Shown in pieces: positions 1-63,000 of a DNA stretch of 64,000 nt. Position numbers and translations under genes: made by a program. Position 1 is the stretch's first letter. Each line of letters starts with the position of its first letter. The DNA comes from Glycera tridactyla (lineage: Eukaryota). The notes beneath the pieces were generated by a model, which was not told the DNA's origin, did not search any database, and saw only the letters and a program-made list of their open reading frames with translations. The DNA is taken from assembly GCA_965644265.1 (NCBI GenBank), contig OZ286476.1:20398001-20462000 (forward strand). Direction: 5' to 3'.

Positions 1-97
1 AATACTCCATACCAATTCCGCATTGCTGCTGAGAATGAGATCGGCATGGGACCATTTGCTGAACTTGCTGAACCTGTCACTCCAAAGAGCCAGCATA
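1..97 (+). CDS. Exon 1 (partial): C-terminal part of Fn3 (A-Fn1)
   Basis: [32 protein letters not shown], donor a|gtaagt, phase 1; not in the ORF track. Confidence 0.92.
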
Positions 98-3000
98 GTA
101 AGTGGACCTATATCATCCATCACCACTTCTTCAGTAGCTGCATTTGAACCTTAAACTGTTTGTTCTAAGAGATACTTCTTCATTGTTCTAGATATTTCAA
201 CATTTATATCAAGGTGAAAATACCACTCCTGAGCCTGCAGGCTGTTCAGTTTGACTAACAGAGAGAATGTTAGCAAAGTCTTCTACCAAATATTGTTCAT
301 CTGAGGTTCGACACAATGTATGGGGACGTGATTTCTGTTACAAAATGTTAGTGACCATTAGTTGCTAGTCAACAGCCTGCTGGAGTCAAGATTTTAAAAC
401 ATTTTGTTTGATGTGAAAATAGCCACATTTGTTGAGTCCATAACTTGCTTATGTACCACCTTTTAAAAATTTCAAAATTCGAGACTGAATTAACATTCAA
501 GATTCATTCATAAGTATGTTTCGATAAATGGTGATATGCAGATGTATAATACTCCATCTTTTCCATCTGACCAATACAGTTTTGGAACCTAATGGAGTTG
601 TAATGTGCTTTTTGTTCAGATCCACCAGGACCACCTTCGGCACCAGAAGTGTCTGAGGCTCGCAAGGATGGTTGCGTGTTGACATGGAAAGCACCAGAAG
701 ACGATGGTGGCACTCCAGTTACTGGGTACATCATTGAACGTGGAACTCCAGGCAGTGCCCGCTGGTTGCGCCTCAACAAAAAGACAGTTGATGAGCTCAC
801 CTACAAGGTGACTGAGCTGATTGAAGACAACGAGTATATCTTCCGCATCACAGCTGTCAACAAGATTGGTGAGGGACCACCAGGACCAGAGTCTGAACCT
901 ATGAAGGCTAAGGATCCATGGGGTGAGTTGGATTTCTCTTGCATTTTTCGATGCCAAGTTCAGGTACTTCAGAATTGTCCACTATCTCTCAGTCCTACAC
1001 ATATATCAAAGATGCACCAACTAATTTGAAATTGTTGATGTTTGATCATTCACAATGGACAATCATTCATTTAATGTGGTTTTTCCACAGATTGTTGATA
1101 ATCTGTCCACTAAGTCATGAACTGTGACAAGCCAAATTACCCAACAGATGAATTCAAAGATACCTAATTGCCAGTCATTGTGATTTTGCAATCAGGATTG
1201 CCATTATCATCCTTGCATGATGATATATGCAGGGACAGGAACTGCACAGTGGTAGCAGTAATCGCAACACCCACAGAAGCAGCAGCAGGAGCGACTAGTA
1301 TTCATGTGACCCAAATCCTCACTCACCCAATCGCTGTATGATGTATCTGCTTTTTACCAGGAAGAGAATTTTAGAAATACAGTCCTAATCTATAAACTCT
1401 GTTGCCTTTCATTCTTGCAGACAAGCCTGGTAAACCCGATCCACCAACCATCCTGAAGATGACACCCAAGACATGTGCATTGTCATACCGACCACCAATG
1501 GATGATGGCGGTGCACCAATCACCAACTACGTTATTGAGTACCGTGTAGAGGGCGGATTCAAGTGGGTACACGCTAATGTGGATGAGACAGTCTCAGAAA
1601 CCAAGTACACTGTCAAGGTAGGTCCAGACTCTTGTCATGACTCTCAATGTATGAAGCCTAAAACCATGGATTTGCTTCCAATGAATTTTCCAGGTCATTT
1701 TGTGAATTTTGCTGTGGAACACTCTAAATGATACAACTGTGTTGTGCAGCCAATGCTCTCTCNNNNNNNNNNNNNNNNNNNNNNNNNNNNNNNNNNNNNN
1801 NNNNNNNNNNNNNNNNNNNNNNNNNNNNNNNNNNNNNNNNNNNNNNNNNNNNNNNNNNNNNNNNNNNNNNNNNNNNNNNNNNNNNNNNNNNNNNNNNNNN
1901 NNNNNNNNNNNNNNNNNNNNNNNNNNNNNNNNNNNNNNNNNNNNNNNNNNNNNNNNNNNNNNNNNNNNNNNNNNNNNNNNNNNNNNNNNNNNNNNNNNNN
2001 NNNNNNNNNNNNNNNNNNNNNNNNNNNNNNNNNNNNNNNNNNNNNNNNNNAGAGGGCATCTAGTCACACTTATCCATTATATCAAACAACTTCCTATGAA
2101 ACAAATCATTGAATATTCTTGAATCTTTTGTTTCAGGGCCTGACTACTGGGACCGTATATGAGTTCCACGTTGCTGCTGAGAACAGGGCGGGTGTTGGAC
2201 CCTTCTCTGATCCTACAGCACCAATGGAGGCCAAGGAACACATTGACGGTGACGCTCCCAAGGTCATCGAGCCACTCATGGATATGGTCATCGTTGCTCC
2301 TGAGGAGGTCCACCTTGAGTCTGACATCAAGCCTGGCAAGCCCAAGGCTTCCTTCCGCTGGTTCAAGGACAACCGTGAGGTGTATGAGGACAAACGTCAC
2401 ATGATCTCGTACGTCGGTGAGACCGCTGCACTTCACATCAAGGAGAGCGCACTCTCAGATGCTGGATATTACCGATGCGAGGCCGCCAACAAGGTTGGAC
2501 GCTGTGATACCGAGTGTACACTCACTGTACAGAGTAAGTCAATCTATGATATATCCTGAGTTACAAATATGATAAAGAGGGAGAACAACCTGGTATTTCA
2601 CTGATGACCTGTCTGACTCTGTCTCAGCTGTTCATGGTGTTGCTGTGTCAGTCATGAGTGGGATGTGTTGGCGACATTTTTCTTAATTGATATTATGATA
2701 TATCCTGATCACCATCAAGTGATTCATGTAGGCTCGCCATTATGGTGAAAGATCAGACCAATGGGAATATGTCTGTAGAGCCTGTCATTGTACATGTACC
2801 GTAGATGAAACATGATCCTTTTCTGCCAGAATTCCAGGTGATCTGATATAGGGATGAAGCTCAAAGAAGTATATTGCAGTACACATGGATCATATATGGA
2901 TCTATATGGATCTATATGGATCATAAATATATTATGAATGGAGTAATGATGGAAAGTATGACACTGTACTCATCAAGCACAATGACCACATCAGCAGAAC

Positions 3001-6000
3001 CATGAACACTGATGGCAGAGTTGGGGAGGTCTTCATCGAAATACAGAGTTAGAGATTTGGGCTCATTAAAGTTTGAACACCTGGGAAAAGGGAGGCCTGG
3101 AGGCCCAACCAATATTGAAGCAGCATTGACTCCTATCATACTCTATTGATAGCTTCTCGATAAGAGCAATCCAATCACACCTTTGGAACCCCAATTACCT
3201 CTGATTGTACCATATCAGTCTTGGTGGAAAACTTTTTCAGCCAATCTCCCATCAGGAGAGCTGACTGGAAAAAATCACTTGCCCGAAAATAAATTGACTC
3301 TCCCGGATATGTACAAAAGGTGCTGGGAAATTGAGCTCAAACTGAGAGCAAGTGTGAGGAAATGCCTTATCATGATAATAATTCCAACGTATCTATCATG
3401 TGAGTGACTATCTAAGTGACACCAACCCAATTTTTTGCTCATGTTCGTTCCTCGAAGTCGAGCATGTGCAGATATATGCAAAGTCATCTCACCAGAAATA
3501 GGAGTTTTGTTTGTCATCACAAAATATTCATAACTTTCTGATCAACTGAAAAATTTACACTCTCCCATCAGGAAAGTGAGATTGGTCGTTTCACTCTCCT
3601 GAAACCAAATTCACTCTCCCTGGGATTCAGGAGAGTGGCTATAGCAGAATATTGCATATGATTCATTATATCTTTTAGCTGATGAAATATAACTGTGTGT
3701 TGCAGGTCCACCAATACTGACTTATGAGAATGCCCTCAAGGACCTTGTCTCAGTCAAGGTTGGTAGTACCTTCATCCTGATGGTGAACATCACTGCCTTC
3801 CCGAAGGCCAACGTCAAGTGGTACCACAATGACCAGCCGGTATCTGCTGGCATGGGTGTCAACATTGAGGGTGATGCCACATTCTCGCGTCTCACCATCA
3901 AGTCTGACAGCGGAGAACAGTCCGGAAAATACAAGATAACTGCCGAGAATGAGGTCGGAAAGGCCGAAGCAGAATTTGAAGTCCTCGTCAAAGGTAATTA
4001 GGATCATTGTATCTCAGAATGCCTTCATCAAGCAAATCACCATGCAGTCCTTCTCTGATGACATTCTAGCTACAAATGACAGCCATTTTTATCACAATTT
4101 CCCGCTAGTTTGTGTTGTGGTGATGATCTCTATATTACAAAAAAATTTTGATGTACTTCAATCTTGAACTAATGAAATTGTATAACAAAAATATTCCATG
4201 TATAAATATAGCAACATCCCATTTTTTGTGTTTCAATGTCTTTTCAAGCTTGAGGATTTCACTACTGTCTGCAAGAGACAATCTTTAATGGCATAATTGA
4301 ATTAATCAATATAAAAAAAGAGTATTTTGCAAAATTGTGTACGATGCATAGCTTAGCTGGAAGTTCAGATAATGTATTTTTTCAAGACACCAGTGAGATT
4401 CATATTGAGTCTTGCCTGTTATTGGTGTATCAACATAACTGCATTCTGTGATATATTCATTGACAAATGCCTCCAAATTATTCTACTTTCAGACAAGCCA
4501 TCACCACCACAGAGCCTATGTGTGACTGAAGTCAACAAGGATCATGTGAGCCTGAAATGGGAAGTACCCAAGTCAGACGGTGGCTCAAGGATTACCGGAT
4601 ACGTCATTGAAAAGGCAGATACAGGTCGACGTACCTTCATGACTGCTGGAACAACCGATGAACTCACATTGAACTTCAAGGTCACCAAGTTGGTGGAGGG
4701 CAACGAGTATCTCTTCAAGGTCAGCGCTGAGAATGCCATTGGCACCAGTGATCCAGCAACCTTGGATGAGCCAATCAAGGCCAAATTGCCCTTCGGTAAG
4801 TTATTCACATCTTTTGAAATAAGATCAGTACCTCTCATGCCAAAATTATCTCATTCGTTTGATACCCGAATTCCACCTATGAGATAAAATATGAACTATA
4901 CAATGCATTTCCATCCTCCATGATTAAACAATGAATTGGGATTGTATCAATATTGTCCATCATCATGAGTAATCGTGATCCTAATATCATATAAATTGTC
5001 TTTAGAAACAATGCCCTTTTGTTGAGAAGTCCTAATATGCTAATGAGGGGGCATGGCCAAGTAGCATGTCAATGAATATTGAATATGGATCATGAAACAT
5101 GGATATGCATGAATGAACTGAGTTTTGGCCGCAAATATGAGCTTGATCACTTCAAATAAAATATGCACCAAAAAAAGAATTCAACAGCAGTTGGATAGAA
5201 TTTGAATAGAATATGATTTGAAATTGTATGTGATTTATTGATTAAAAATAGGAAGAGTAGGAGAAGTATTTGGGTGGTGGATATGACATCATTATAAATA
5301 CGTGAATATTATGTTACAATTAGCCAGTTGGTGAAACGAAAAATAAATCACCAAAACTAGATTATTGTGTTTTTTCTTCCTCAAACAACAAAAATGGTGT
5401 TCCTACAACAATATTTTATGAGGAAACCAGAAACGATGCTCAATTTATATGTTATTCGTTTGTAGATCCACCCTCACCACCACAGAATGTGCGTATTGAG
5501 GATCTGACCAGCTCGAGTGTGACCCTGAAGTGGGACGTACCATCCTTCGATGGTGGTTCACCCATCACAGGTTACTATGTTGAGAAGTCAACTGGCTACA
5601 GCTCTCGTTGGACCAAGTGCAACCGTGACCCAGTCTCCAACCTCCGTATGGCATTCACAGACCTGATGGAGGGTACCGAGTATGAGTACCGTGTCATGGC
5701 TGAAAACGCCGCCGGTATCAGCAAGCCATCTGCTACAACTGGTGTATTCAAAGCCAAGGATCCATTCGGAAAACCAGGCAAACCTGGTACTCCAGTAGTG
5801 AAGTCCATCACCAAGGACAGTGCAACCTTCAACTGGGAAGCACCTGAAGATGATGGCGGTGCACCAATCACCAACTACATTGTTGAGTTCCGTGAAAGTA
5901 GCGATGTGAAATGGCGAATGGCGAGCCGCGGTGAGAAGGTGACAAGTTTGACGTACACGGTCAAGAATCTGCGAGCTGAGACTGAGTACCAGTTCCGTGT

Positions 6001-9000
6001 GACAGCCGAGAACAAAGCTGGTCAAGGACCCCCATCTGACCCATCACAAAATGCCAAATATGGTCAGTATACCCCAGTGAACAATCTGCATCATTTTTCA
6101 GATTGATTGATTATAAAATTCGACTACAGGAATTTTCCGCTATTATGCTGATGAAAACATGTGTCAGTTAGTTTCCTGCTAACTCCCTTATTTATACTTG
6201 TGCACTGCATATGAGAGTCTGTGCTATAAGGCACATCATTTTGAGACTATGCACATGTAAGCATATATTATATGCTGGAAATGCACATGCTCTATAGAGA
6301 TCTTTCTGAAGATCACGTCATTTGAAGTGTAAAATGGTGCATAGAAACTGCATCTGTGTGCCCCAAAGCCTATACATCTTCCCTTGTTGGGAAATCCCCC
6401 AAGACAAGCTCACATTCAAAATCTGATTTTGTGCCTTCCAAATGGAAGATTAGACCGCGGTAGTGAATAGTAAGTCAATCACTAAGTATTCAAAAACTTC
6501 ATCATAAAACCAATGGGGTTATAAAAATTGTTTCACAAACAATGCTTTTTGGCAGGAGAGCAAGATAGAGTAATATATTAATGTGAGGGGTCACCACTAG
6601 GTGGCGAGCGAGGAAGTCAGAGAAAGAGCGGGAAAATTGACATGAGTCAGTTGCTGAAGAAAATTATTTCAAATCAGTGTGTGAAGAGACCCTAGAATCA
6701 GCAATGTTATTGCCTTTTGTTGGATGATCCGGTGTACGGTTGAAAATGGTCTTGAAAGTGGGATGAGGTATGAAATCATGGGGGTCCCAACTTGATCATC
6801 CATTATAAGTATAAGTGTTTCACTCAAAATATTGTTCTTGTAGTGGTAGCTTTGGTTGATCCTTTATTTTCTCTCTTTCAGTTGAGACCATTGAGTTCAC
6901 AAAGAACCTGGAAGACAAGAAATTGGACAAACTCAACGTTAAGGTCACCTTGGAGTGTGAAATCTCCAAGGAAGGTCTGAAGTGTGAGTGGTACAAGGAT
7001 GCACGTGCTCTCCGCCGTGATGCCCGTTATGACATTGTCGCTGATGGCAAGGTCCACCGCCTCGTCATCGAGAAGGCAACATGTGACGATGTTGGTACTT
7101 ACCGATGCGTCTACCAGAATCTTGAGACCACTGGCAAACTCACCATTGAAGGTAGGTTCGAATGACAAATGTACAGCCGAAAAATCATGCTTTTTTTCCA
7201 ACCAAGTATTAAAAGTAGTCACGCAGGCTATCCAGTTGGGCCTTAGAGAAAAAACTTTTGTCAAATCTCCCAACAATATTTCTTTTATCTCAAGTTTGAC
7301 AATAAAGAACAGGGATCCATTCTCCATTACAAAATCTTACAAAACATCATCCACGATTAACTGCAGCTGAATAGTGTGCTGTTTCAACTGATTAGTACCA
7401 TAAAGACTTTTATGTCCTACTGCTGAGCGACATGGGATTGTGAGGAAGAGAAATCCTTGGTATGAAAGTTTTCCTGTGTGCTTTTGAGTGTATTCGTGCA
7501 TGTGCGGGTGTGTATAAGAGGACTAAAAAGCTCGTAGTTTTTGAAAAATTGAAGCAGATTCCATTTCCATTTCTGAATGCTATTGATGGTTAACCATTTC
7601 TTGTCATACAAGAAAGAGCCTCTGGCAATCACAAGAAATCAATCAGAAAACAACACAAGAAACGAAGGCCTTCCAAGATGATATTTTGCAAGTTCAAATG
7701 ATTATTTATGTCAGATGTCTATAAAATGGGTGTGGTAACATTCTCCCCATTGCTTGCTTTTATTTTCAGTCGCACCAAGCTTCGGTAAACATGACTATGA
7801 GGATAAGCTGCTACTGAAGGCTGGAACATCTGCCTGTATCGAGCTGCCATTCACGGCCGCCCCTCAACCAGATGTCACGTGGAAACACAGAGGAGGAGCA
7901 CTCCCTGGTAGTCGCTTCCGTGACGAGACCATCTACGGTATGACGTCACTGACGCTCACCAAGGTACAGATCCCTGATGCCGGAGAGATCACATGTACAC
8001 TCAAGAATGCATTTGGAGAGTGCAAGTTCACCATCAAACTTATTGTACTTGGTGAGTGTATTTTGGTATTAAACGCCCTTCCCTGACACATCTAACACTT
8101 CAGAAATAGGTCCTACTTTTAAGCTTACTGCATTTGTGAAATTTCCCATTCATGCATTCTTTTCCATGCAGCTTTGCATTCCTATCACCTAAATATGGGA
8201 TATAATTCATCAAATGATGGTCATATTTTTCATTCCTTTAAAACCCTCCTTTAGGGTTTGCTACTATTGATCTTTTATAATTGTGTATCAATGAGTATGA
8301 CTAACTAATCCATACTTGCTCTGCAGAGTTAGTTGTAATATATTGATTTCTGTATTGTATATGTTTCATATGAAAATAGACAGTTTCATATTAAATGAAT
8401 CAGATATATCTCATAATTTCTTCCATGATAGTTTCATCCATCATTTGTTGTGAACTTGATATAAAAGTCATGAGTGAATGTTGCTCTTCATGCATTTCAT
8501 CCTTATCATTGTTCTCTTTCAGACAAACCTGGTCCTCCACAGGATCTTAAGGTGACCGACGTCAGTGAACGTGAGATGACCGTCAAGTGGTCCGAGCCCG
8601 AGTCCGATGGTGGAAGTGACATCACACGTTACATCATCGAGACCCGTGAATCATTCCGACACAGCTGGCAGCGTATCGGAACCGTACAAGCTCACGATCG
8701 CCGTGAGTTCAAGGCCACCAGTTTGATTCAAGGTCAGCAGTACTCATTCCAGATTGCTGCCGAGAACAAAATGGGCGTTGGAGAATATGCAGAAACCAGG
8801 ACACCAGTTGTTGCCAAGAGCCAGCATGGTGAGTATCGTCAGAAATTGTAAGATATTTGCAAAATGTATTTATCAGGATTCATTTTGATTGTTAGATTGA
8901 TTGATCATAATCCATATTCAGTCAACACATGGAGAAGACAGATGTGGTATTGGGGGATGCTGACTGATATAACTGTGGAAGTTGGAATCCATTTGTAAAA

Positions 9001-12000
9001 AGAGTGACAAGATGCTCGAGAGTGAAAAATAGACAAGTAAATTCAAGGAACAGACTATTGGGACGTAGCTGAGGAAAGAATGGGGTTGCATTTTGAAAGC
9101 TTCAACAATAAATTTTATTGCTGTCAGTAACATGAAAATTCTACCCTCATGAGAATATTGGGACAGGTTTGTCCCTGGAAATTACAAATTTCATAAAGAG
9201 ATTTGTCCTGCTAGAGAATAAATGCAATGATATTGATTTCGAGACTTAAGGAGTTGACCGGTTTAAGTATGTTAAGAGAGGATTCTTATTCATCATGAAG
9301 TAACTCATCATTTCATCCTGAGTCACATTTATCATGGTTTCAGATGTACCTGGTCCACCATCTGCACCCGAGGTCGATGAAGTCTTGCGCAAATCATGCG
9401 TGTTGTCATGGCGACCACCAGAGAATGATGGCGGCAGCCCCGTGACTGGCTACTTCATCGAGCGATCGGTCGCTCGTGCCAGCCGCTGGATTGTCATCAA
9501 CCGCAACGCTGTCAAGGAGACTAAATACATGGTGGAAGACTTGATCGAGGACAATGAATACCAGTTCCGCATCATCGCTGAGAACAAGGTCGGACAAGGT
9601 CCACCCGGTCCATCCTCACGACCTGTTGTTGCCAAGGATCCATGGGGTAAGCTTTCACATGATCTACAAGTGGCTCTTTCCCATGTGTCCAAGAGTGGTC
9701 TTTGTCCATACCTTCATGCAATATTGCCCATCCAGCAAAATCGATTGCTGAATATGGGATAAGCATTTGTTGTCTATGAGAAAGTCTGCCTCCTGTAAGG
9801 CAACTGGGCTATAAAGCTACTTGAGATTTACAAAACAAACTTCAAGCATGATCAAATCAAGGTGAAGAGACAGAACTCCCCTTCACTCCTGTGGTAGAAC
9901 TGCCTCTTCTGTTCTGTCATGATTCTATCATACAGACACAATGCATAGATGTACATTGCCAGACTTGCAATATTTAGTAACCAGAAAATCTATTTTAAAC
10001 AGATATTCTTGTTTAACCCAAACATATCAGTCAGTGAGATTTGACCTTGACCTATCCAGGATGCAGTTAGGTGCCATCTTGGAAATTTCTGGATAGTGAA
10101 AGGTTCTTTGAGAGCTCTTCTTTGTTATTCTGCTATTGCAATCCAATCTATTCTTGTATTTTACAGAAAAACCAGGCAAACCTGGAACTCCACAGATCAA
10201 GTCCCTTGGAGACAAAACCAAGGTCACACTGACCTGGAAGGCCCCATCAGATGATGGTGGTGCCCCGATTACCAACTATGTTGTTGAGTACCGAGGCCAG
10301 GGTGAGTTCAAGTGGAAGCGTGCGACAGAAGACATCGTCAGTGAGCTCTCGTACACCGTGAGCCGTCTCAAGGAGGACGTCATGTACGATTTCCGTGTCT
10401 CGGCCGAGAACAAAGTCGGTGTTGGACCCCCAGCAGAGAACTCCATGGCTGACAGTGAGGACCGTGCTTGTGAGTTCACTTCTTTTTGTCTCTTTTCATC
10501 TCGTTTTAAAACAATTTCATATCATAATTAACAGGAACACATTTGTGGGACTGCCCACTGTGTTGTCAAAATGGCCAGACAATATGATGTGAATTAGGAA
10601 ATTACCTCTCTTCAGGCACAGACAATCAATTGTCCAATTTCGTAAATGTTTTAAAAATCGTTCTCGTGAAGAACCAATTAATGATTATCAGGAAACTCAA
10701 GTGATAGAATAGCAGGGTTTAACTATGTTCCATATATGATCAATAAGTTTATGTGCCATCTCTGTCCCATATAACCCATTGAGTGTTGAAAGGACAAGAC
10801 CAATGCATCAATCAATCAATCGGAGTGACATCGAGCATTTCTCAGTCAATTGATCAATCACCTCTTATATTTATAAAAATATGGGATTTCAGGAGTGCTG
10901 CATTTGTGATAATTGATATATTTATTCTTTGTTTCCAGCCAACAAAGCACCCAAGATGAAGAGCAACCTGACCGACATCACCGTGCTTGCACCCAAAACC
11001 GCTGTCTTCAGTGCTGACATCTCACCAGGTGCACCGGAGGCAACCATCAAGTGGTACAAGAACGGCAAGGAGGTAAGGTCACATCAAGGTCACAGAGATC
11101 AAGGTCAAGGTCATACTGAATCGTGATTCATCTGTAGTGATGAATGTCACTGTATAGCAGGACCACCTGCATTGAAAGATAATTTGTTAACACCATCAGT
11201 GCAGGTCTATACGTTGCTAGCTGTGAGTAGCCAATGGCTAACAAATTTACCCCCTGGCTACCATGTATGGCTTACCAAGTTTAGAGCTCTCTTCCTCTGA
11301 AATTTGGAGAGGTTGTAATTGACAATTTATGGACTGGCTGCCAACATTTTGCAGTAGCTACCATAGATATCAACTTAGGGGCCAGCCTGCTTTCAAATAT
11401 TATGGCCAACATAAAGCCCTGTAGTGGATGGGTAGGATGACTTCTACCCTTCAGCATTGTGTATAGGGATGTACAAGTCACAAGTCCACTCTTGGAATTA
11501 TAGGTACAGCTGAACCCGTCTGTAAAGTTGGGATCGGTTATGTGAGAAAGTGGTCATCATAGACTGGTGTCCTCTGCCGAAAGGTGGTTCATAGTAGAGA
11601 ATATTATCCCTGTCCCTTTGTAAGCTAGGAAAGCAGAGTTTTCAGGACACTTACATTTGCCTTCATCAGCATGTGCAAACTTCAGGTGTTCTTTTCCAAG
11701 ATGATCACAAGATGAGTCTTATTTGGGAGTGACGAGGAGTGACCGTCATACATATTCAAATTTTTTCATCTCTGTTTTCCAGGTGTACAAGAGCAAGAAA
11801 TATGAGATGAAATATGACAAGAAGACAGCTACACTGAAGATTTCTGACACTGAGATTACTGATGCTTCTGTCTACAAGGTCGAGGCAGCTAACAAGGCTG
11901 GACGTTGCGACTCAGAAGCTATGCTCACAGTACAAGGTATATCTCACTGTTTTCCCAATAGAAGATTGAATGTAACTTCAAGTTTTGAGACAACAGCAAT

Positions 12001-15000
12001 TTTTCACAGAGCCTTATGGATGATTCATGATGTAATCATTGGTCAGAGTGCACTATACAGTGAAACTGGTGATGTGAGACCTCAATGAGAGACCAATATT
12101 CAATGGAGACCACTTTTCTATGAGCATTTTCTCCAACATTTAGTCAGATATGTCTTTTCATGAGACATCCTCACTAGACAAACCATTTTTTGGTGACAGG
12201 TATATGAGCCAGGGTGTTTCCCCAGTACAGGTTTAAATGCATTATCCAAGCAATTAATACCTGTGGTTGTAAAGAAAAATTCAGAGGACCTTGAAGCTCA
12301 TTGATAAAGTGGTCTCTGGTGACAGGAATAAGAACTACATGGTCAGCTGATCATAATCAGCCAATCACCATCCTGTAACCAGGAAAAGGAAGCCATTTTG
12401 ATTCTTACAAACTGCCCCTCCATTTTCACTGCTTTCGGGCCTATACAAAAAATCATTCAAACTTAACATGTTGAGTATGTGAGAAATATGTGTGTTACGA
12501 GTACAGTAGAATTGAGAGTGGATGATTTTTTTCTGTTTCATAGCTGCACCAGACATCAAGTATGACAAGAAGCTGGAGAACATCAGCATCAAGGGTGGAG
12601 CTCTCATCCTGATCCCAGTAGATGTCACTGCTGAGCCATCAGCCAAGATCACATGGGATCACAATGGCCGCCCTCTCGATCGTGGTGATAACATCAAGAT
12701 TGAGACCGGCAAGGACCACTCCAAGGTCGAGGTCAAACCAAGCACAGCCAAGAATGGTGGCAAATACACTGTCACTGCTACCAATGCTGTAGGCACTGCC
12801 ACTGCTGTATTCACAGTTGTAGTCATTGGTAAGTTTGAGTTTCTACTTCACTCTTTTTATCATCATTTCTGCACCCAAAAAAAAACCCAACTCATTTAGT
12901 ATTGATGGATTAGCCACTCATATTTATGCAGGGTTATTCCCTATCAGTTGGTAATATTGAAGTGATCACTTGAGATTTCCCCAGAATCTGAGTAGAAATT
13001 ATAAATTGTTTATGTATTTGAGTTTCGCGATGGCTCGAATGGGCCCTACTGTCCAACTCATAATGTAACCAATAATCAGTAGGGTTTATCTTGTACATAA
13101 CCAGACCTCCATTATGAGGTATCAAAATGTAACTTATACCCTGTGATCATTAAGATTTCTGAGAAACTTTCACAGGTTCTTTCGAGAATGTGGTAAAAAT
13201 GACTTTTCCTAAGCGTAACTTGCTCTAGGCAAGAACATCACTTCAATCTCAAATGTCATTCACTAGGATGGACCTGCATGGAGCATGAATTTGGCCAACG
13301 CACATGCTTCTGTTACTTCCCATGTCTTCAAACCTAAAACAAAGTTGACTGTCTGTTTCATGGTATAATTCACACCTCTGATTTCACCTTGTCTTCCTGT
13401 TCCAGATGTTCCTGAGGCCCCTCGCAACTTGTCAGTAACAAAGGTCTACAATGACCATATGTGTCTGGCATGGGACGAACCCGAGGCCGACGGAGGCTCA
13501 CCAATCACCGGCTACGTCGTCGAGAAATGCGACTCAAGCAAGATGAACTGGACCAGTGCTGGTAACACATCTGATTGTAACATCAAGGTCAAGAAGCTGT
13601 TTGAAGGAACCACCTATCTGTTCCGCGTTGCTGCTGAGAACAAGATCGGAGTTGGTGAATTTGTCCAGCTTGACAACGGTGTGAAGGCTAGACTGCCTTT
13701 TGGTGAGTATCTGTGTGCTGTGTGTTCATTCTTCATCTTCTGTGTTTTCCCATTATCAGTTGATTCACCTGCTGCTTGGGGTCGCCGATGCTTGGCACAG
13801 AAAAGCTTTTGACAGCAATCAACATTGCATTGGTATACCCAGTTTCTCCAATTCATCATTAGGATATCTGACTTCCATCACAATGTAGGATGATAATAAT
13901 CATGATAATGATAATAATGATAACAATAATGATAATGATAATAATCATGATAATGATAATTATGTGCGGCATCTATATAGTGCCATGTTATCAGGTGCTG
14001 CCCCTGCTAAAAGGTACTCTGTGGATGCCATTTTCTTTGTTTGTTTATGCACTCATCGACAATGAAGAACAGTAAATTTGACAATATAGCCAAACATACT
14101 CAGCTAGTACCTTCATGTGAAGGCCACCTGTCAGCAATGGCGACCCCAAGCAGTGACCATTTTTTCTTCAGTAAATATCTCCTCTACATAGGCCATCTGT
14201 AGATAAAGCACACTTTTTTGAGCAATCGAAGGTTCATTTCATGGATGAGTTCAATGGTATTCTGATACTGGGTACAAAACAGACCATGCACCTTTGGGAT
14301 ATACTGACACATAAGGACCACTTGCTAACAACGCAGATTGCTGTGGTGGAATGTAAGCGATAGCACTCAAACAAAAGGGCACCCTATATTTCTCATGGCC
14401 TTGGGTTTGTCCCATATGATACAGCAAGTGGAAGTTGCGCTTTTCTAGTAGGATCCAAATTGTAGTCGTATAGGTATACAAACGCGTGCTGTATCTGGGC
14501 CAGGAAATATGATTCTAGGGGCTATAAATCCCATGACCAATATAATCTCGGTCAGATTTCCTGGCCAACCTCCTCGGCTTACTTCTTGTATATCAGTCTA
14601 CTGTGTGTGGCTTGTAGAGGTGGGAACTACATTCCCTATTGTATAACATACCTGGGAATGGGGTTGACAAATGGGGTGTTATGTGGGGTGGACAGGATGA
14701 CTGATGGAGCTAAAGTAGGGTTGTTTGGGGGTCGTTACAAGTGGATAGATGAAAGCAGCTGAGGCCCGAGATGTGAACACCCGGTACTTGGCCAATGTCA
14801 GCTCCCATAGCTCTCACCCATCAGACTCCTTTCTAAAGCATCAGAGACCTTGGTATGTATCTTTGAAAGCATTGGACACATAGGCATGCGTACATGTATA
14901 GGCGAACCTGCCTAGAATGTCAACCATGATGGCCTTTGTAGACCACTAAGTCATGGATGAAAGTTGTTTGCGAAATAAAATACATGAAAGTGCGATCTGT

Positions 15001-16325: not shown

Positions 16326-16391
<66 letters not shown>

Positions 16392-51000: not shown

Positions 51001-54000
51001 AGGCGCTGAGTACTACTTCCGCGTTGCAGCCGAGAATGCCGTGGGAACCAGTCAATTTGTGGAGCTCCCCAGTCCTGTCACTGCCAAATTGCCATTCAGT
51101 AAGTAAAACATCCTGTGTTAGATCATCTTTGTCATCTCCGATCCAACAAACAAAAAGTCATTCATTAAAATCTTCATATCTTGAAATCATGAATCATTTG
51201 CTAAAAGCTTCATACTTCTTTCCTCTATGTACATTACATCATTTTTTGACAAGTGAACTAGGGAAAGAACTTTGGCAGCCATGCAGATGAACAGTCATGA
51301 GAATGAAAATGAATAACATAAGCAGTTATTGGTAACAGAATAATCAACTATTTTAAAGTCACACTCCTCTGAGGCCCTGATCAGACCAATTGATTTACAT
51401 CAGTCATGTTGATTTTGCCCTTCGATGAATTGTTTCTTGTTCGAATAACTGAATAACTTCGGTGATTTTGTTTCTTCAGAAACACCCGATGCACCACGCA
51501 ATCTGAATGTCACGGATATAACTCACTCATCCCTGAACATCACGTGGGAAGCACCACGTAATGACGGAGGTGCCAAGATCCGTGGTTACTACGTCGAGAA
51601 GCGTACTGCCTACAGCTCACGCTGGTCCAAGGTCAACAAGACGATGGTGAAGGAGACTGAACTGTCCTTGTCTGACCTTCTGGAGGGTGATGAGTACGAA
51701 TTCCGTGTCTACGCTGTCAACGATGCCGGCAATGGAGAACCAACCGAAAGCTCCGGTGTCATCCTGGTTAAGGATCCATTTGGTGAGTAGAATTCTCTTT
51801 TACATTCAAACTGTTGGCACAGAAAAGTCACTTTCCTATTTATCAGGCTGTACTCTCTGATTTGCCTGAAATGGCACTCTTATCTTGAGGTGTCGGTGAA
51901 AGAATGAGCCCTTTGAATGTAATTGCAAATATGTCATAATAGGCTAAATGCCAGAAATTGCAATGTTCTAGATTGTATTTCATCTCAAATCCAGATTATT
52001 CGTGGAGAATATTGAATGCATAAAGGCCTCCTCTGTACAGAGATCAATCTGAAGCACTTCACAGCCATATATCAATAAAGGTCCCTTTTTGGGATAACCT
52101 TGGTGACCTATATCGTCAGGTTTGACTGTATATTATTCTTTTATCGATTTATATATCAAAGTTCCCTTGCCTTGCCAAAGTGCTCTTTTCTTCATCCGAT
52201 AGTATTTTTTCCACCAGAACAAAAAAATAAACAAAAAACTTTTTGAAAACAGTAACCATGAACTACACAAGTGATATATGCTTTTACAGTCCGACCATCG
52301 ATCAGACACTATGTTTGAGAACCGAGTGATTTCTTCAACCTTGGATAATCCTGCCTGCATTGAAATGAATAAATTGATCAATCAATCAATCAATTATTGT
52401 ATATTTTCAGACAAGCCAGGTGCACCAAGTGCTCCAGTGATTGAGAACATCACCGAGAGCAATGCTACGATCTCTTGGACCGGACCACATAATGATGGCG
52501 GCAGCCCCGTCACCAACTACCGCATCGAGATGAGGACCGTAGGATCATACAGATGGGATGCTGTCTACACACCAGACAAGGTACATGATCCTTTACAATA
52601 TCCTGTTTATTGATTCAGAAAAAAAAGGAAAATATGAAAAAATTAAAGAAAGAAACAGTGTTTTCAATCACTCATGGTTGTTCGAGAATTGCAACAGCCA
52701 AAAGTTACATCATCATGCGACCGGAGCTTGTGGTTAACAAGACTAATTCTTGTACTACTTTTTCAATTCGTGATTCAAGTGAGTGCCACTGACCATGTCA
52801 ATATCCCTATTAGATCAAATTGCACCTTCTAAAAGATGAAAGTGTTTGCCAAATTTGACGAAATATTTGAAAAATGTGACATAAGACCATTCAATGAGAG
52901 TGCCTCCAATGGAAGACAACTTTCCATGACTGTTTTTCTCGTTTGAACACTGAAAATGTCCCTCATTGAGGCACCATCAGTTTCAAAAGACCATGTATTT
53001 GATACATTTAGGATGAACTCTAACTGCTTCCTTCACTACATATTTTTGTTGTTTGAGGAAAGACAAACACAAGTATCCCCCCCTCATTAGCATATCAACA
53101 CTTGTCTCTCCCACAACTAAAAAGCATTGTTTCTACAAACAATTTATATAAAAGTTTTGTGCAATATTTGTGTGTTTAGGTGAGAGGCAAATCATACACG
53201 ATTGGTAACCTCCTGGAGGAGACGGATTACGAGTTCCGAGTGATGGCCGAGAACAAGGCTGGAGTCGGAGCTCCATCAGAGCCATCCCGATCCGTCAAAT
53301 ATGGTGAGTTTCCCGCGTATTTTTCGCCCCCACCTTCCTTAACTCAACACCTCTGAAATCTGTTGTCATCGGCTTGGTACATTCTGGTGATCCAGCACAT
53401 ATATTCTGGAGTGTGGAGTGTTCTCCTGGCTGGGTTATGTAACTGCTATTCTTTTGGCGGTCTGATTTGATCAGTGCATATGGCTGCTTGCTCATACATG
53501 GGCTGAGATTTGATCATGTGAATTTTTTGAGATCTCCAATTATATAGGTGGCAAAATGTGCTGCCCTCTGTCCTGGTTCAAAGTGGTTTCTAAGTATGAA
53601 TTTGCATTGTTTTGAGGATATTGATAATGAGGCAGTCAAACAAGCTCAATGTTCACCTCATGGGATAAATCGTGATTGTTAATTGCTGTGGAATTTGAGG
53701 ATTAATTCCAATGTGAAGATTTTGTGAATGTTCCTCTCATCAGCCAATTTGTTGATGATGCCGGTTTGTCTTGTTTTGCAGAGGAGAAGATTGTGTTCAA
53801 TCCACCTCTGAAGGACATCACAGTCAACCGCATCGGTGAGACCGTTAAATTCTCCTGCGAGTGCAGCCGCTCTGGTGCACGTGCTCAGTGGATGAAGGAC
53901 GGAGTAACCATCACTCCCGATCGCAAATTCGACATCGATGCTTCCGGTAACACATACAGCCTCACTATCAAGAATGCCGATAGTCGTGACATCGGTGACT

Positions 54001-57000
54001 ATGCTATCGTTATCAAGGGTCATCGTTCTGAAGCTCGACTGATGGTTGAAGCGAAACCGGAATTCCTCGAGACCGATAAGTATGCCAAACCACTGGTGCT
54101 CCGCGCCGGTCAGGCAACTGCTGTCGAGATTCCATTCACAGGCTCGCCAATGCCAAAGGTCACATGGAAGCTGAATGATCAGGTCATCTTTGACTCCCGA
54201 CGTGTCAAGATCGAAGTCATCTACGGCATGACGTCCATGGTGATCACCCGCTCTGAGCGCCCTGATGCTGGTCGCTATACAGTAACTCTGGAGAACAACT
54301 TTGGCAAAGCCAATCTCCACTTTGAAATTATTGTACTCGGTGAGTGTTTTTATTCATCTATACTAGACATGTCATCAATCATGCAGATGCTACACAAATA
54401 CTTATACACGTAAATCGTGACATTGAGCAATTCAACACATACATGAACAGTCAAACCTCTCTATAAAGACCGCCTTTGGTTACTTTAGAAAGTGATCTTC
54501 ATAGGGAGGTGGTCTTTATAGAGATGTAATTTACTGTTGAAATACTACCACGGTCACAGCTCAGGGTGGTCTTGATAGAGAGGTGGTATTTATAGGAGGT
54601 TGGAATGTATGTACATAAAAAATACTAAGGCTATGAGTTTAGTTTCTCCACCATGACCACAACAAATCTTCAGGTAGACCTGATGATGAGAGACTAACTT
54701 GCTCCACATTTGATCACCAAAACCAAAATCACAATGTGTTTCTTGATTCAATTCATTCCATAAATCTTGGCTACATTCCTGTAAAATTATACATGTGACA
54801 AGCAAGGCATCCTGTTTTGAGGAATCAAATTCCCTTAGATGGAGGTGCTTGCATGTTTCAAGTTTCATTGTGATATGAATCTGTGTTATTTGTAGTAATA
54901 CTTACTGTCAATATTATTTTGATGAGTCTTCATAATATGAAGGGCATCTCAATATAGCCTAGGTGGTGCTTACAGGACGTAAAACAGAGAAGCAACCAAC
55001 CAACAATGATATGAATTATTCTGAACAATTAGAAATGGGATTCAGAATTTAAGTGCGGCTGTGTTTCATGATTGGCATGTATGAACTACATTCCGAGATA
55101 TTATCTGATTTCTAGAAATTTATCGTTGATTTCCCTCCACTCATGTCTGTTACATCTCTGTCTACAGACAAGCCTGGTCCTCCAATTGATCTGAGATCTA
55201 CTGGAGTCACAGAGAACACCGTGACCTTGAGCTGGTCCAAACCCAAGGATGACGGCGGTAGTCCCATCACCGAGTACGTGATCGAGAAACGTGAAGCGTT
55301 GCGTATGATGTGGAAGTCTGTTGGATCAACTAGTGACACAGAGTTCACCGTTGGCCGATTGACCGAGGGAACCCAGTACGTCTTCCGCGTGGCTGCTGAG
55401 AATAAGGTTGGAGTTGGTGCCTTTGTGGAAACATCCAAGGGCATTGCTGCCAAATCTCCACACAGTAAGTTTCATTTGTTGTATTCATATATAGTTAAGT
55501 AGATCAAGTTATATATTGACGAATAGATAGTGTATAGCTCAGAACTGGATGGTAATGTTACATCTTAATGACCAAGATTACCTATCAAATTGACCAGTGC
55601 CAATGGCTACCCTACCACAGAAAATTGAGTGATTCTAGAAGGGTTTGGAAATAGTGTGAAAGAAGAATTGTTCAGTAAAACCTGCTATAGTGTAATCCTG
55701 TCTACAGTGAAATGAAAAATCTGGCCCAAACGTTTTTTTTCACTATAATTGACCTGTATATAGTGAAATCCTGTCTACAGTGAAGAGAAAAATCTAGCCC
55801 ATGACTTTTCACTATAGACAGGTTTTACTGTATCATAATTCTTGTTCCATAATGGTAGTGGATTATGGAGTAAAATTGAAATAGTTTTTAGTGTTTTTTT
55901 ATTCGCTATTGCTTGATTATATTCATGAACTTCATTTGGACTTGAAACTACATTTGAGGTCCTTATTATATTGGACGGAATACGAGACAGGCCCAAAACA
56001 TATTGATATGAATGTTGGAAAAAGTTTCCAGAAGTCTGGGAGCCATCCCATCAATGGTGTGTGCATAAGTTAGAGTTGCAGTTTTCTTTTTGTGTCAACT
56101 CAGGAGCAATCAAATCCAGCAGAAAAAGCAGGGCTCTATCATTAGATTTTGTGAAAGGAGACATGTGCAGTTTCTTCAACAAGTGGTCATATTTGTCTGA
56201 TTTCAGATGTACCAGCGCCACCTAGTGGTGTGAAGGCCAGTGATGTATTCGCTGACTCATGCATCCTATCATGGAACATTCCCGTTTCCGATGGTGGATC
56301 GCCACTTCTGGGCTACCACATTGAACGCCGACCAAGCACCAGCCCACGCTGGACCAGGATCACATCACGCCTTGTTTCCGACACCACATACAGCGTTGTT
56401 GACCTCCTGGAGGGAACCGCTTACGAGTTCCGCGTAATTGCTGAGAACAAGATTGGACAGAGCTTGCCGAGCCCACCAACACTCCAAGTGCAGGCGAAGA
56501 ATCCATGGGAGAAACCAGGTCCGCCTGGATCACCAGTTGTGTCCGATGTCACCAAACGTTCTGCCAAACTGTCATGGAAAGCACCAACTCATGATGGCGG
56601 TGATGAAATCCGTAACTATGTTGTTGAGTACAAGATCGCTGGCACCTTCAAGTGGACTCGTGCCAATGAAGGCGAGCGTACCATGGATCGGTCATACAAG
56701 GTCACCGGTTTGAAGCAGGACTACGATTACGAGTTCCGTGTAGCCGCCGAGAACCGTGCCGGTGTTGGACCTGCATCTGAATGCACACTTCCCATCAGGA
56801 CACAGGAACCGGAAACCGGCAAGGAACCCAAAGTACTCAGCCACCTTGAGGACGTCACCGGATGTGCCGGGCAACCTGTACATCTGGAATGTGAAATCTC
56901 ACCAGGCAAACCCAAGGCTGAATTCAGATGGTAAGGATAATAACTGTTATCAATCTGACTTTAAAACAAAAATTCATATCAGACAAATGGCTGCAAGTCT

Positions 57001-60000
57001 GTCATATTTATAGTGTTGTTGGGTGCTCACATGAATTAGGGCCCTTAAATGAGCAAATACGGTGATATCACAACTGTTTCTATACCATTTCCTCCATTCC
57101 CCAGATATCTGTTCTTGCTTACTGAATTCGGAGTTGACCCCTTGTCTTCATTTTCAAAATCAATCTTAATTTCTCACCTGAACCTTTATGATTTTAGAAC
57201 CAGAATCTTTCATAATTTCATTGAATTTGTGTTAATATTTGACTTTGTTTTCATTGATATTGGTGGAAACAGTACCTGGCTAGAGGTATTGAGTTGAGAC
57301 CACTTTGAAATATCTAGTGTACTCAGAGACTATTTTCATAAGTCTGACTATTGGTCACTGAAGAAGGGTTTATGAATGAACATGTGTCTATTATACAAGC
57401 ATTGTAATGCCACTTCCTAGGCAAGTGTAATCAGGGAAGGTCATTGAGTACCGAAGGCTTATTGTATATCAGCGGTGAATTTACATTGAAATATGATGGC
57501 TTTTACAGGTTCAAGGATGCAAAGGAGGTCTACAAGATTGGCACACACAAGATCAAGATGGATTACAACGAGGATTCGATGATTGCATCACTCGTCCTCC
57601 ATAGTGTCGATGCCTCTGACAGTGGCAAGTACAGGTGTGAGGCCAGCAACCGACTCGGCCGTGTTGAAACATCATGCAAGGTCACAGTCAATGGTGAGTT
57701 ATTACACTCGTCTTCTCTCAGATAGGTGGAATGTTGGATGTCAGGAATCATATGCCGGTAGATTTGAATATGAAATAAGTAGGTAAATATGAAATTTGTT
57801 TCCCTAAAAGGGATTGACTCTGAATAAGTATTCTCCCAGTGGAACCAGATTTGAGAGACCTTCGTTTTGAGAGACTGTCCTCTTTTGAGAAACTGCTCTT
57901 AATTGTCATAGTCAAATATACCTCCAATGAGAGACCACCTGTCTCCAGAGATCACTTATGATTGACCTTCGGGCTGGTCTCCCATGACAGATTTCACTGT
58001 ATTTTATTCCTTATCAGTAGATTTCCTAAAATTAGCATTTTGGAAATCAGAAGTAAGCTATTCAGACGGATAATTCACATGTTCATATAAAAAGATGGTC
58101 TCTCCTCATATGTTTCTTGCCTACTTCCTTTGGGAAAGTCTTGAATGATTTCACCAATGTCCATTGCATAGGTGTCACAATATAGCACAAATGGAGCTGA
58201 TGTGACATCAACCCAGAAACAACCAACCTTCATCAATGCTTGCTTCATCATTATCGAAATCTGAATTTGGATCACCAATATGACTGAGTGTTTACTTTCA
58301 TCTTTTTTTCAGTTGGACCAAAGATTGAGGTGGACATGCGATACTCGTCAGAACAGGTTGTAAAGGCTGGAAGCACACTCATCCTTCCAGTTAACTTCAC
58401 CGGCATCCCAGCACCACGTGTCTCATGGACACGTAACAATGTACCGCTGCTGAACCTGAAGGGACACGTCCACATCGACACCGGCGACAACTACTCCACT
58501 CTCACTATCCTTGGTACCGAACCCGAGGAGGCTGGAAAGTTCAAGATTCTGGTCGAGAATCTCGCCGGCAAAGATGATTATGAGTTTACCGTCAAGGTGA
58601 AGGGACGTCCCTCCGCTCCTGAGAGTCTCCGTGTGCAGAATATCCTGCGTGATTCAGTCACCCTGGCATGGGACAGACCTGAGTATGATGGCGGTAGTCC
58701 AGTAACCGGATACGTCATTGAGCGTAAGGATGCTGCACGTGGTGGATGGGTTACCGTCGGTACTGTGGATGCATCTAGTACTCGTTTCCAGGTCCGCAAG
58801 CTGTTGGAAGGCAGCGAATACAACTTCCGTGTGCTGGCTGAAAATGCCGTTGGTGTCAGTGAACCTGTTGAAACATCACAGGGTATTGAAATCAAGAGTC
58901 CATTTGGTAAGTGTTCAGCTTATATCCCACCAGCATGGGTTTGAGAGACGTTGAACATGACTCAATCAATTGATGGATCGATCTATCAGAACTCTTTAGT
59001 AGCCCTAAACAGACATATGGTTGGATTCTAGATGATTTTATTGAGTATTGGAAATGTAAATCATTGATAACAATAGAAATGAAGGTTAGGGATTCTGTCC
59101 TTTATCTTGCTCAATGAGTAGAAACAAAACTGGAGACTTCGACAAACTCAGAATTCATTAAATGAAACCTCAACATTGAAAACCTGAATTATTGAATTCT
59201 ATGCGGGCAGAGATTGTTCATGTCAGACACTTTGGCTTAGTTGGGGGCGGGGGCTGGATGAAAACTCCATTCCTTAGATTTCATTGGTGAGTTCCATGAC
59301 TTGTAGTTTTTCAATTGGAACTTTGAATCATATACACAGTGGTGCTAATTTTCTGAAAAAAAATTCTGAAATCCTAAAATTGGGTGAAAAATGATAATAC
59401 CAGAAATTGCTAAAATTTGCTTGGGAGTTTCAAAAAAATGCATTTGATGATATATGGGGGGTAGTTTCAGAAAATGTTTTCATATTTCTGAAAATTCTGC
59501 TTCATCCCATTAGCATCACTGTAGACAGCAGTACCATCCAGTCAGTTATATTTGATTCTATACTCAGCATTGTTTTTTTTTTCTTCCAGACGTACCTGAT
59601 GCCCCACGTAATCTGGAGCCCAGTGAAATCACCAAGAAGTCCATCACTCTGGAATGGATGTCACCTCGTAACGATGGTGGCGCCCCCATTACCGGATACA
59701 TTGTAGAGCGTCGCCAGGGCTACAGTAGCCGCTGGCTGCGTGCCTCACGCGCCCCAGTCCTTGACTGCTGGTTCCGTGACACAAATGTCTACGATGGTGC
59801 TGATTACGAGTACCGCGTCAGTGCTGAGAATGAGGCTGGACAGGGAGCTGCATCACGACCACTTGGACCAATCATTGCCAAGGAAGCGTTTGGTGAGTTG
59901 AGACAGCCAATGTACCAATTTCATAAGCCTTATACCACAAACTATTGTCTATTAATTTCAAATTGCAAGTTATAGAAGTAAGGAGGTATGTGAACTAGAC

Positions 60001-63000
60001 ATGAGATTTTCAGGCACTGACTGCGCCAATCTGATGAATTGAGATCTATAAAGTAAAAAGGTCGAAATATTGAACAATCTTCTTGAATGAAAACGTGTCA
60101 ACGATGCAACTTCTCATATGGGAAATGTATCAGGCTGGTTAGTTTGGCTAACAGTGAAAATTTTCTACCTAGTATTTTATCTTGACGGTGTTGAAAAACT
60201 ATTGGGACCCCATTTCCATAACTAGAAATTAGCAACTGCTAGCTGTTTCTGAACATCCTACTGATGTCCATATCATCAAATGAACAATATTGTTGCATGG
60301 TTGACATTCCAGATATTAGATTTATTTCTTCACATGAAAGTCGGACTAGATGACTAATAGCATTCATCAACATTCTTGAATGGTCTTCATCGACAATTCA
60401 ATCCACATGTGGGTAAATGTATATCCCTTATATCACTGTTTGTATTTTCCCCTACAGATGTACCAAGCTGTCCAGGTATTCCTGAGGTGCATGGCGTGAC
60501 GAAGAGTTCCGCATCCCTCAGCTGGGCATCACCGCGTAACGATGGCGGATCTCCCATCACTAACTACCTTGTCGAGGCCAAGTCCACCTACTCACCCAAC
60601 TGGAGCATTGTCAACATCGGCGAGAAGATCCTCGGAAACAACTTCACCGCCCGCAACCTGTTTGACGGAAGCACATATGAGTTCCGCGTTATTGCTGAGA
60701 ACCGTGCTGGTCGCAGCGAACCTTCTGGTAGCTGCCAACCAGTCGTCATCAGGGAAGCAGTCAGTAAGTAGAACTTTCTGTATTTCATTGCAGTACATAT
60801 ATATTTCCAATGTCACCAGCAGCAGATGCAGTTTGCCCCGTCTCACAGAAAATACATGTATATACAGTGAAACCTGTGTCGAGAGACTGCTTCAAGTGTC
60901 ACCCAAAAGGTGGTCTCTCAAAAGAGGCGGTCTCTCATCGGAGGTATATTTGACTATGTCAAATAGAAAAGCTGCCCTAAAAAAGCGGTCTCCCGCTGGA
61001 GGTGGTCTCTTGTCTCTCTTCACAGGTTTCTCTGTATATAAATTTGTGGCACAAAAATTTCATCTTGACACATGGTAGAGTGGCATCAACCTCCATTTCA
61101 ATATGATTAAAAGGTGTACATGCTGACTATTCACATGAGAGATGATTTTTCATGAGAATTCCCATTCAAATTGTTCACACATAAATGTTCAGATGATAAG
61201 CAACACATGAGAATGAATCAAGGAATGACATTCATGAAATGAAAGGCAAATACCGGTAATCACATATTCACGTATCCTGTAATGTGGCAAACATACATAA
61301 TGTGGCAAATTCCTACCAAATATTATACATGGTAAGATAGTTAGTGAATCTAAGAAAAAGTGAACTGCGACTGATCAACCTGCTGGCATAATTTCATGTT
61401 AACACTTGGCTTTGACAACAAATTGAGTATATGATGTATCATTGCGAAATATATGAACAGCTATGAACATTTAATGTGGAAGGTCACGTGTCATTGTCAT
61501 TCATCGATTGGGAGAAAAAGTATGCTCACATAATGATGTATCAAGGATGTTTGTTATGAATTGATATTCATAATTCTGTATTGTCTCTTCTCATCAGCTG
61601 GTGATGCTCCTCGTGTACTTGAACATCTTGATGATGCTGCCGCAAAACTCGGTGAATCTGCCACATTGAAGTGTCGCATCACCGGCAACCCGGAACCAGA
61701 AATCAGCTGGACTAAGGACTTCCAGAGGATCTCCAAGTCACGCAAATTTGACGTCCGATATGAGGATTCTTTTGCAATCCTCGTTGTCCGTGACGTCGTT
61801 GAGCATGACATCGGTCGCTACATGTGTGAGGGTATCAACCAACATGGCAGCGCTAGTACCATGGCTGATCTCAAGGTCAAAGGTATGTACTCCTCAGGCA
61901 TGAACTGCGTTGATGTATCAGATTATTTTCAAACATTTTTGATCAATTGAACTTTCCACCACTCACCAATAATTTCCTTCTGATGAGCTATTCATTTGTG
62001 AATTATTTGCACAGAAACTACTGTTTCATCATGCAGAAGTATGAATCAGCTGAAGTCATATTGAACATTCATAAATTATGAATTCACTTACTGATATTTT
62101 ATGTAATATCTGAAGACTTATCCTCAGTGGAATTCTATCTCATATTATATTTGAGTCAAATTTCATTTGAATTCATCTTGCTCACACTGTGAAGTCTTTT
62201 GTAATAGACAGATGAATTATACTAGGTTCATGCTGGACACGAATTCCACATTGGTGCCTTTTTCAATTTTGCTGAGATGTTTACGTATTGTATGTGTTTT
62301 CAATTCTGTTTCCAGTACCACCAAAACTGGTGTATGACCGTCATCGTGAGCTTGCCATTCCTCTGGGAGGCTCATTGAAGCTTCACATGACAATTGAAGG
62401 ACAACCGTCTCCCAACGTCTCCTGGTACAAGGACGGCGCTCCTCTCAAGGGCCGCCTCAATGTCAACGTCGAGACTGACGAGTACATGACCTCGCTCACA
62501 ATTCGCCGTTGCAAACAGGAAGATGAGGGAGAGTACAGAGTTGTTGCCAAGAACCAGTGGGGTAGTGATGAAATCAGCTTCGACGTCATGGTCATCGGTG
62601 AGTCTTCACTCGTGTTTTCTTCATCCCACCAAGCTTTAGGATCAGGTGGACATTTCCTCGTCTTGGTGGTGAATCATACTCTATAGCAAGAGTTGCCAAC
62701 CTGCGCAGTTCTAGCAGTATTGCAAGTGGACGGGGATGGGGACTCTTGCAATCATGCCATATTTAAACTGGTTTCTTCCATCTGGATTAATGCTGTTCTT
62801 AAAGGATATGTAATTCACTTTGCTCTACTTTGTGAAATGTGCCCTGACAAGAAGCATTTGCTATGTTTGTATACCCTCCATTCCCACTGGTACCCTATCT
62901 GACAGCACATCAGTTCACATATCAACTGAAGCTAGGGTACCAGTCAGCAGGTAGAGAGCAAAAGTAGTCCCGGCAATACTCCATGCCCAGTCTGGGAGTA

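Follow-up and report, generated by a model that had tools for sequence, protein, structure and literature searches.

A ten-domain super-repeat of the titin A-band type predicted in Glycera tridactyla and conserved module by module

The window analysed here, 64,000 nucleotides (nt) of Glycera tridactyla (assembly GCA_965644265.1, contig OZ286476.1, positions 20,398,001 to 20,462,000 of the forward strand), holds part of a gene that is predicted to encode an Fn3-rich, A-band-type segment of a giant titin-like invertebrate muscle protein. The segment is built from a super-repeat of ten domains, in which two modules with the order Ig-Ig-Fn3-Fn3-Fn3, named A and B, alternate. Judged by its sequence, this unit belongs to the known titin family and appears to be a hitherto undescribed form of A-band super-repeat that other species conserve. 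As an explanation of the whole we favour, with moderate confidence, a ten-domain titin array of A-band type that would probably lie along the myosin filament as a periodic scaffold or ruler.

Domain order and periodicity of the array

The gene was modelled with a dynamic programme that scores splice sites and codons and chains exons bounded by GT/AG, the codon log-odds being trained on mutually similar parts of open reading frames (ORFs). The model comprises 49 exons on the + strand, spanning positions 2 to 63452, with a stop-free product of 4,938 amino acids (aa). Domain-sized open frames in the window are confined to that strand, and the gene extends beyond the window at both ends. All 48 modelled introns are GT..AG, with a median length of 603 nt; 42 of them are in phase 1 and located at domain borders, and the remaining six lie inside domains. 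The window had been read before from its letters alone, and the exon numbering of that sequence-only reading was reproduced by the separate splice model, including the 270-nt exons 8, 18 and 28 (6882-7151, 32371-32640 and 42471-42740) and exon 46, which ends at 60763. The lengths of the four complete super-repeats came out identical to the residue (Table 1).

Domains were called with local hidden Markov models (HMMs) built from the single-exon domains, and Pfam served as a cross-check. The product is a chain of 51 domains, FFF(IIFFF)x9 IIF (I, Ig; F, Fn3), which follow one another without linkers at 97.8 aa per domain, so that a super-repeat measures about 978 aa and each of its modules A and B about 489 aa. 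The Pfam check that had been suggested beforehand found I-set or fn3 at all ten positions of the unit. Mean identity between domains of the same fold is highest at lags of 10, 20 and 30 domains (44.3%, 43.1% and 41.0%), falls to about 35.5% at lags of 5, 15 and 25, and is about 31% at the remaining lags.

The domain tree, also proposed in advance, gave the same picture, the domains clustering by position and by A/B type. By maximum likelihood Ig1 and Ig2 are split with support 99/97, and the A-Ig1 (94/95), B-Ig1 (89/90) and A-Ig2 (99/99) domains form clades of their own. The first and third Fn3 positions (Fn1, Fn3) are clades supported at 100/99, each with A and B sub-groups, and A-Fn2 and B-Fn2 fall apart into two groups. 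The position labels can be mapped on the trees with 4 and 6 changes, where 3 and 5 would be the lowest possible numbers; none of 200 shuffles equalled this. Hence HMM order, lag-10 peaks and trees agree on the doubled Ig-Ig-Fn3-Fn3-Fn3 unit with alternating modules that had been described from the letters, and the motifs named there (IE[IL]PF, AKLPF, YSSRW and others) are legible in the translation.

The modules were numbered m0 to m10 along the window. Those of the same type are all 43-48% identical to one another; therefore no young duplicate lies inside the window. The Igs of the last module, m10, are B-like where an A module was due, so that the A/B alternation, and with it the array, ends at exon 46.

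Orthologues and relation to the titin family

Relatives of the gene were reached by word searches with two exons, and the matches were ORF fragments, many of them on large eukaryotic contigs. Four stretches from three species were compared (assemblies ENA ERZ22147071, ENA ERZ25069859 and GCA_022702875.1): L001 and L009, which share one ENA contig, L002, which belongs with L003 to the second ENA assembly, and L007 from GCA_022702875.1. All are ordered (IIFFF)n, and the best match of each of their domains is its positional counterpart in the window. The positional orthologues cover m1-m4, m3-m7 and m6-m10, and together m1-m10 one-to-one in the three species. They are 50-70% identical, with clear margins over the value of about 44% between paralogues at the same position. 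The comparison thus indicates that the modules are individually orthologous and that the difference between A and B is old. Since paralogous modules are less alike than orthologues, the array appears to predate the species splits, and a recent block duplication was rejected on the same grounds as the source of the periodicity. Downstream of m10 the orthologue (L003:6639-19769; L004; L006) has a run of 14 or more Fn3 domains that contains no Ig. On a walk of about 27 kb in this direction solely Fn3 domains were met; the last Fn3 exon seen closes with a splice donor, and the 10 kb beyond it are free of domains. Comparable long Fn3 runs occur in the fragment P0060 (Logan) and in Saccoglossus XP_006823012, where 18 Fn3 domains precede Ig-Fn3-Fn3 repeats.

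A second ten-domain layout was found on the metagenome scaffold L005 (ENA ERZ23486787 scaffold_2190, L005:1-18506; proteins P0057 and P0194). Like the window gene, it carries a super-repeat of about 978 aa (period 973-983 aa) in which A and B halves can be told apart, with at least five complete units and partial units at the ends; identity between its domains peaks at lags 10 and 20. Unlike the window gene, its unit is Ig-Ig-Ig-Fn3-Fn3-Fn3-Ig-Ig-Fn3-Fn3, with an I-set Ig, according to Pfam, at the slot of the window's B-Fn3, and it comes from an unrelated, intron-poor organism, with very large exons that hardly any intron interrupts (ORFs of 2,489 aa and more than 4,200 aa). That the ten-domain length is kept despite the exchange of Fn3 for Ig is the best indirect sign that selection may act on the length of the unit.

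Block duplication is a known mode of growth in titin-like arrays, and the ten-domain period could be a mere trace of a tandem duplication of two-module blocks, corresponding to no physical periodicity, in a chain that binds filaments generically or acts as a spacer. This explanation seems rather unlikely. The modules of the window are about equally diverged and each is kept individually, with less likeness among them than to their orthologues; the A/B distinction is conserved; and L005 holds to ten domains and about 978 aa through the Fn3-to-Ig swap.

Known proteins were surveyed with an exhaustive search of representative proteins, the longest of those listed having 7,602 aa, so that annotated giant titins lay beyond its reach. 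Long Fn3 arrays dominate its output. It returned amphioxus titin-like proteins with 7- and 11-domain patterns, twitchin-like proteins (insect, crinoid and rotifer) with Ig-Fn3-Fn3, and hemichordate proteins with long Fn3 runs, along with a few IIFFF fragments. A further fragment, P0181, has the order Fn3x3-Ig2-Fn3x3-Ig2-Fn3. In a joint tree the Fn1 domains of the window join amphioxus C2/C5/C9 and projectin T2, that is, the Fn3 following an Ig (support 95), and the Ig2 domains join the A-band Igs, amphioxus C1/C4/C8 and projectin T1 (support 96). Ig1 falls with N-terminal Igs of projectin, M-band Igs of amphioxus and the run of Igs in P0142. In each module an extra Ig of I-band or M-band type thus precedes an Ig-Fn3-Fn3-Fn3 block as found in titin, a block that is present twice in the chordate 11-domain repeat.

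The best-scoring PDB matches are titin A-band chains (human and mouse, 8g4l, 8q6t). The A-Ig1 of m8 (53784-54050) has its best local match among solved structures in domain C3 of cardiac MyBP-C (8g4l chain bo 455-544; 2mq0) and not in an Ig of the titin A-band. The linker-free I-set/Fn3 array that characterises the titin/connectin-twitchin family is found in the window with 51 domains, which include the sub-classes proper to that family, A-band Ig and first Fn3 after an Ig. The assignment to the titin family made from the letters thus stands, on shared domain classes as well as on structural matches. Ig and Fn3 domains are also combined in extracellular adhesion molecules of the sidekick, DSCAM or contactin kind, and weaker Pfam matches to the DSCAM C-terminal Fn3-like model and some PDB matches to Robo, contactin or DSCAM point in that direction. 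A non-sarcomeric adhesion molecule is nevertheless highly improbable: titin, MyBP-C and myomesin score far higher, the trees put the domains in titin/projectin classes, and the window alone contains 51 linker-free domains of a gene that runs on at both ends.

Within the family, the array is closest in design to the chordate titin A-band, represented by amphioxus XP_066264227 and XP_066263902. Both are linker-free, with about 98 aa per domain and a long, position-specific period, and both use the Ig-Fn3-Fn3-Fn3 block together with the A-band Ig and first-Fn3-after-Ig classes. The periods differ, those of amphioxus titin being 7 domains (692 aa, 98.9 aa per domain) and 11 domains (1087 aa, 98.8 aa per domain) against 10 in the window (about 978 aa). 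Moreover, the window has an extra Ig before each block, lacks the Ig-Fn3-Fn3 sub-block and is organised in two halves of five domains instead of 3-4-4. The chordate order Ig-Fn3-Fn3-Ig-Fn3-Fn3-Fn3(-Ig-Fn3-Fn3-Fn3) was not found in the window, which has no peaks at lags 7 or 11; amphioxus titin was positive under the same scan. Twitchin/projectin (Anopheles XP_040219909), an invertebrate thick-filament protein, shares the domain families and the Ig and first-Fn3 classes with the window, whereas its core is an Ig-Fn3-Fn3 repeat of about 296 aa (98.8 aa per domain) and has neither tandem Ig pairs nor Fn3 triplets. The string Ig-Fn3-Fn3-Ig is absent among the 51 domains of the window and present in Anopheles twitchin under the same scan. 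Re-deriving the patterns from amphioxus titin and Anopheles twitchin thus upheld the difference from both that the sequence-only reading had asserted. The arrangement looks lineage-specific and is yet built of parts shared with titin and projectin.

Myomesin and M-protein resemble the array in being thick-filament (M-band) proteins of the same superfamily, with a PDB match. The layout of myomesin, however, is a single Ig2-Fn3x5-Ig5 with no repeating array and no A/B alternation, in contrast to three Fn3 per block and at least nine repeats in the window. Myomesin is also far smaller than the window gene.

In a literature search the literal string Ig-Ig-Fn3-Fn3-Fn3 led to myomesin only. No published description of the ten-domain A/B unit, of its positional conservation or of the extra-Ig reading was found in the searchable literature, nor any analysis of the window's architecture under titin super-repeats in invertebrate groups. 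Hanashima et al. 2025 did not treat lophotrochozoan A-band patterns, and Loreau et al. 2025 (PMC12063666, Fig. 1A) drew lophotrochozoan 'mixed' titins with no super-repeat analysis. In Platynereis, titin is reported to be expressed in striated muscle (Brunet et al. 2016, PMC5167519).

The array as a possible thick-filament ruler

The match between the 11-domain repeat of titin and the 43-nm period of myosin is the main argument for a thick-filament ruler in vertebrates. The thick filaments of invertebrates often reach a much greater length and contain a core of paramyosin, and twitchin and projectin are too short to set their length. By analogy with vertebrate titin and its 11-domain C-zone repeat, the chain encoded in the window would probably run along the myosin filament, the axial repeat of which would set the ten-domain period. 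A nearly straight chain would measure 43.5 nm, that is, three crowns of 14.5 nm. Each five-domain module would then span 1.5 crowns, which would explain the existence of two alternating module types. With a packing like that of vertebrates the period would instead be about 39 nm. Either way the protein may serve as a periodic scaffold or ruler; both the binding to thick filaments and the ruler role are predicted from this analogy.

The fit in length depends on how straight the chain is. In cardiac muscle the 11-domain repeat corresponds to the 430-A period of the thick filament; the titin chain there is described as resembling a spring, curved into indentations that follow a 3-4-4 pattern, and so has slack (PMC10665186). 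The domains of the window have nearly as many residues as those of titin (97.8 against 98.8), and with 11 domains per 430 A a length of 38.7 nm is expected. To reach 43.5 nm a nearly straight chain with 4.35 nm per domain is needed. The proposal made from the letters, that ten domains come close to the 43-nm thick-filament periodicity, therefore survives as a possibility for a nearly straight chain and is weak otherwise, since scaling by residues gives 38.7 nm by default.

Several results count against the favoured explanation. Scaled by residues from vertebrate titin, the 978 aa fall about 10% short of 43 nm at 38.7 nm. One unit of L005 has nine domains, with two Fn3 that appear fused (10458-10814). 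Neither a kinase nor an M-band end was found in the window or in the approximately 27 kb downstream in the orthologue. Finally, the transcript-like runs described below are presumed to be RNA and carry no tissue label.

The tropomyosin-troponin period of the thin filament is 38.5 nm, near the scaled 38.7 nm. The repeat could accordingly be matched to the thin filament and its repeat of 38.5-38.7 nm, or the segment could serve as a semi-rigid spacer within the I-band or where the A-band and I-band meet. The length of 978 aa at vertebrate packing and the I-band/M-band type of Ig1 speak for such a location, which is still judged unlikely. The nearest solved relatives are thick-filament titin chains, and binding to the thick filament is established for all those Fn3-rich proteins of the family that have been characterised (titin A-band, twitchin/projectin, MyBP-C, myomesin). 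In the characterised chordate and arthropod titins as drawn in PMC12063666, the Fn3 domains are within the A-band part.

Beyond the placement along myosin, a broader and more doubtful scenario can be put forward tentatively. An invertebrate group comprising annelid-like worms and at least one unrelated intron-poor lineage might possess a titin with a conserved ten-domain period of about 978 aa in its thick-filament segment. This period would have arisen separately from the chordate 7- and 11-domain repeats, through the addition of an I-band-type Ig to each Ig-Fn3-Fn3-Fn3 block. Selection would concern the length of the unit rather than its domain types, given that an Ig may take the place of an Fn3, and the period would be a second myosin ruler of independent origin with halves of 1.5 crowns. 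A second super-repeat, differently built and conserved module by module, offers a natural comparison for the idea of titin as a ruler. The spacing of its stripes would tell whether titin-like chains generally measure filament periodicity, and the comparison would show which feature is selected: contour length, domain number or domain identity.

Transcripts, assembly gaps and intron content

Transcript-like contigs, from runs presumed to be RNA and carrying neither expression level nor tissue, bear on the 3' part of the window. Of the words sampled from 58001-64000, about one in four occurs in 12 public runs, which belong to three studies and to organisms coded A and B; exons 44-49 make up about 35% of this interval. 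Within it the contigs map only to exons 44-49, with GT..AG joints at 58906/59590, 59892/60458, 60763/61598, 61882/62316 and 62597/63150. The loose end of a contig before 58313 reads the end of exon 43, which supports the 43/44 junction, and the contigs continue beyond 63452. Exons 43-49 are thus spliced as modelled, including the direct junction between exons 46 and 47, and the region is transcribed. At the 3' end of exon 45 (59887-59892 / 60457) the contigs of organism A (runs X1 and X2) carry four other letters (ATTC), and organism B matches the window there; this is an allelic or species difference beside the splice junction, and the frame is kept.

Table 1. Modules of the array, assembly gaps and dispersed repeats along the window
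Feature	Position	Strand	Content
Exons 1-3	2..1617	+	module m0 (type A): A-Fn1 (end), A-Fn2, A-Fn3 (first part)
Exons 4-7	2137..6062	+	end of A-Fn3_m0, then complete B module m1; positional orthologue in L009
Exons 8-17	6882..31725	+	super-repeat 1, A module m2 + B module m3, 977 aa; order m2-m3 kept in L009
Exons 18-27	32371..41717	+	super-repeat 2, m4 + m5, 974 aa; positional orthologues in L007
Exons 28-39	42471..53303	+	super-repeat 3, m6 + m7, 982 aa; positional orthologues in L001, L002, L007
Exons 40-46	53782..60763	+	super-repeat 4, m8 + m9, 989 aa; last full unit of the array
Exons 47-49	61598..63452	+	terminal module m10 (Ig-Ig-Fn3); orthologues L001-L004
Assembly gap	1763..2050		within intron 3 (1618-2136), non-coding
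Intron 16	13703..31128		17.4 kb, about 30x the median intron; microsatellites, dispersed repeats
Four gaps in intron 16	15753-15908, 16016-16178, 22728-22874, 23284-23551		
Copies of the ~180 bp repeat	60860-61040, 18838-19014, 19193-19343, 33960-34122		
Copies of the ~180 bp repeat, continued	34313-34495, 37649-37746, 47393-47531, 57900-58002		

The window has 42% G+C and five runs of N, all of which are intronic in the model. At the gap in intron 3 the donor of exon 3 (AAG/gtaggt) and the acceptor of exon 4 (tttcag/G) are both in phase 0, and the two exons joined give a complete Fn3 (HMM positions 1-99). The truncated module m0 at the start of the window also follows the pattern, as A-Fn2_m0 and A-Fn3_m0 cluster with their own positions in the tree.

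The other four gaps lie in the long intron 16. The domain scan of the whole window found no Ig/Fn3 ORF inside this intron, its flanking phases match (1 to 1) and the domain order from B-Fn1 to B-Fn2 is preserved. In the orthologous contig L009, B-Fn1_m3 is directly followed by B-Fn2/3_m3, the distance from B-Fn1_m3 to B-Fn2_m3 being 317 nt. For these reasons exons hidden within the gaps are unlikely. Five weak 'exons' that the programme predicted in intron 16 (scores 5-9) were discarded, as they had no Ig/Fn3 signal and broke the domain order. Microsatellites of the (CA)n type and low-complexity tracts surround the four gaps (16290-17450 and 22350-24070).

Copies of a dispersed repeat of about 180 bp, in both orientations, are scattered over at least eight introns. 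For the copy in intron 46 the summed contig depth is above 7,000-12,000 in three of the four runs and about 200 in the fourth; given this high depth, the repeat is a very abundant transcribed element, probably resembling a short interspersed nuclear element (SINE). Intron 34 contains a stop-free ORF of 308 aa (48570-49493, +) with no Ig/Fn3 signal, which is probably the tail of a retroelement ORF. A search with it matched two proteins only, and it is 39% identical to one JGI protein.

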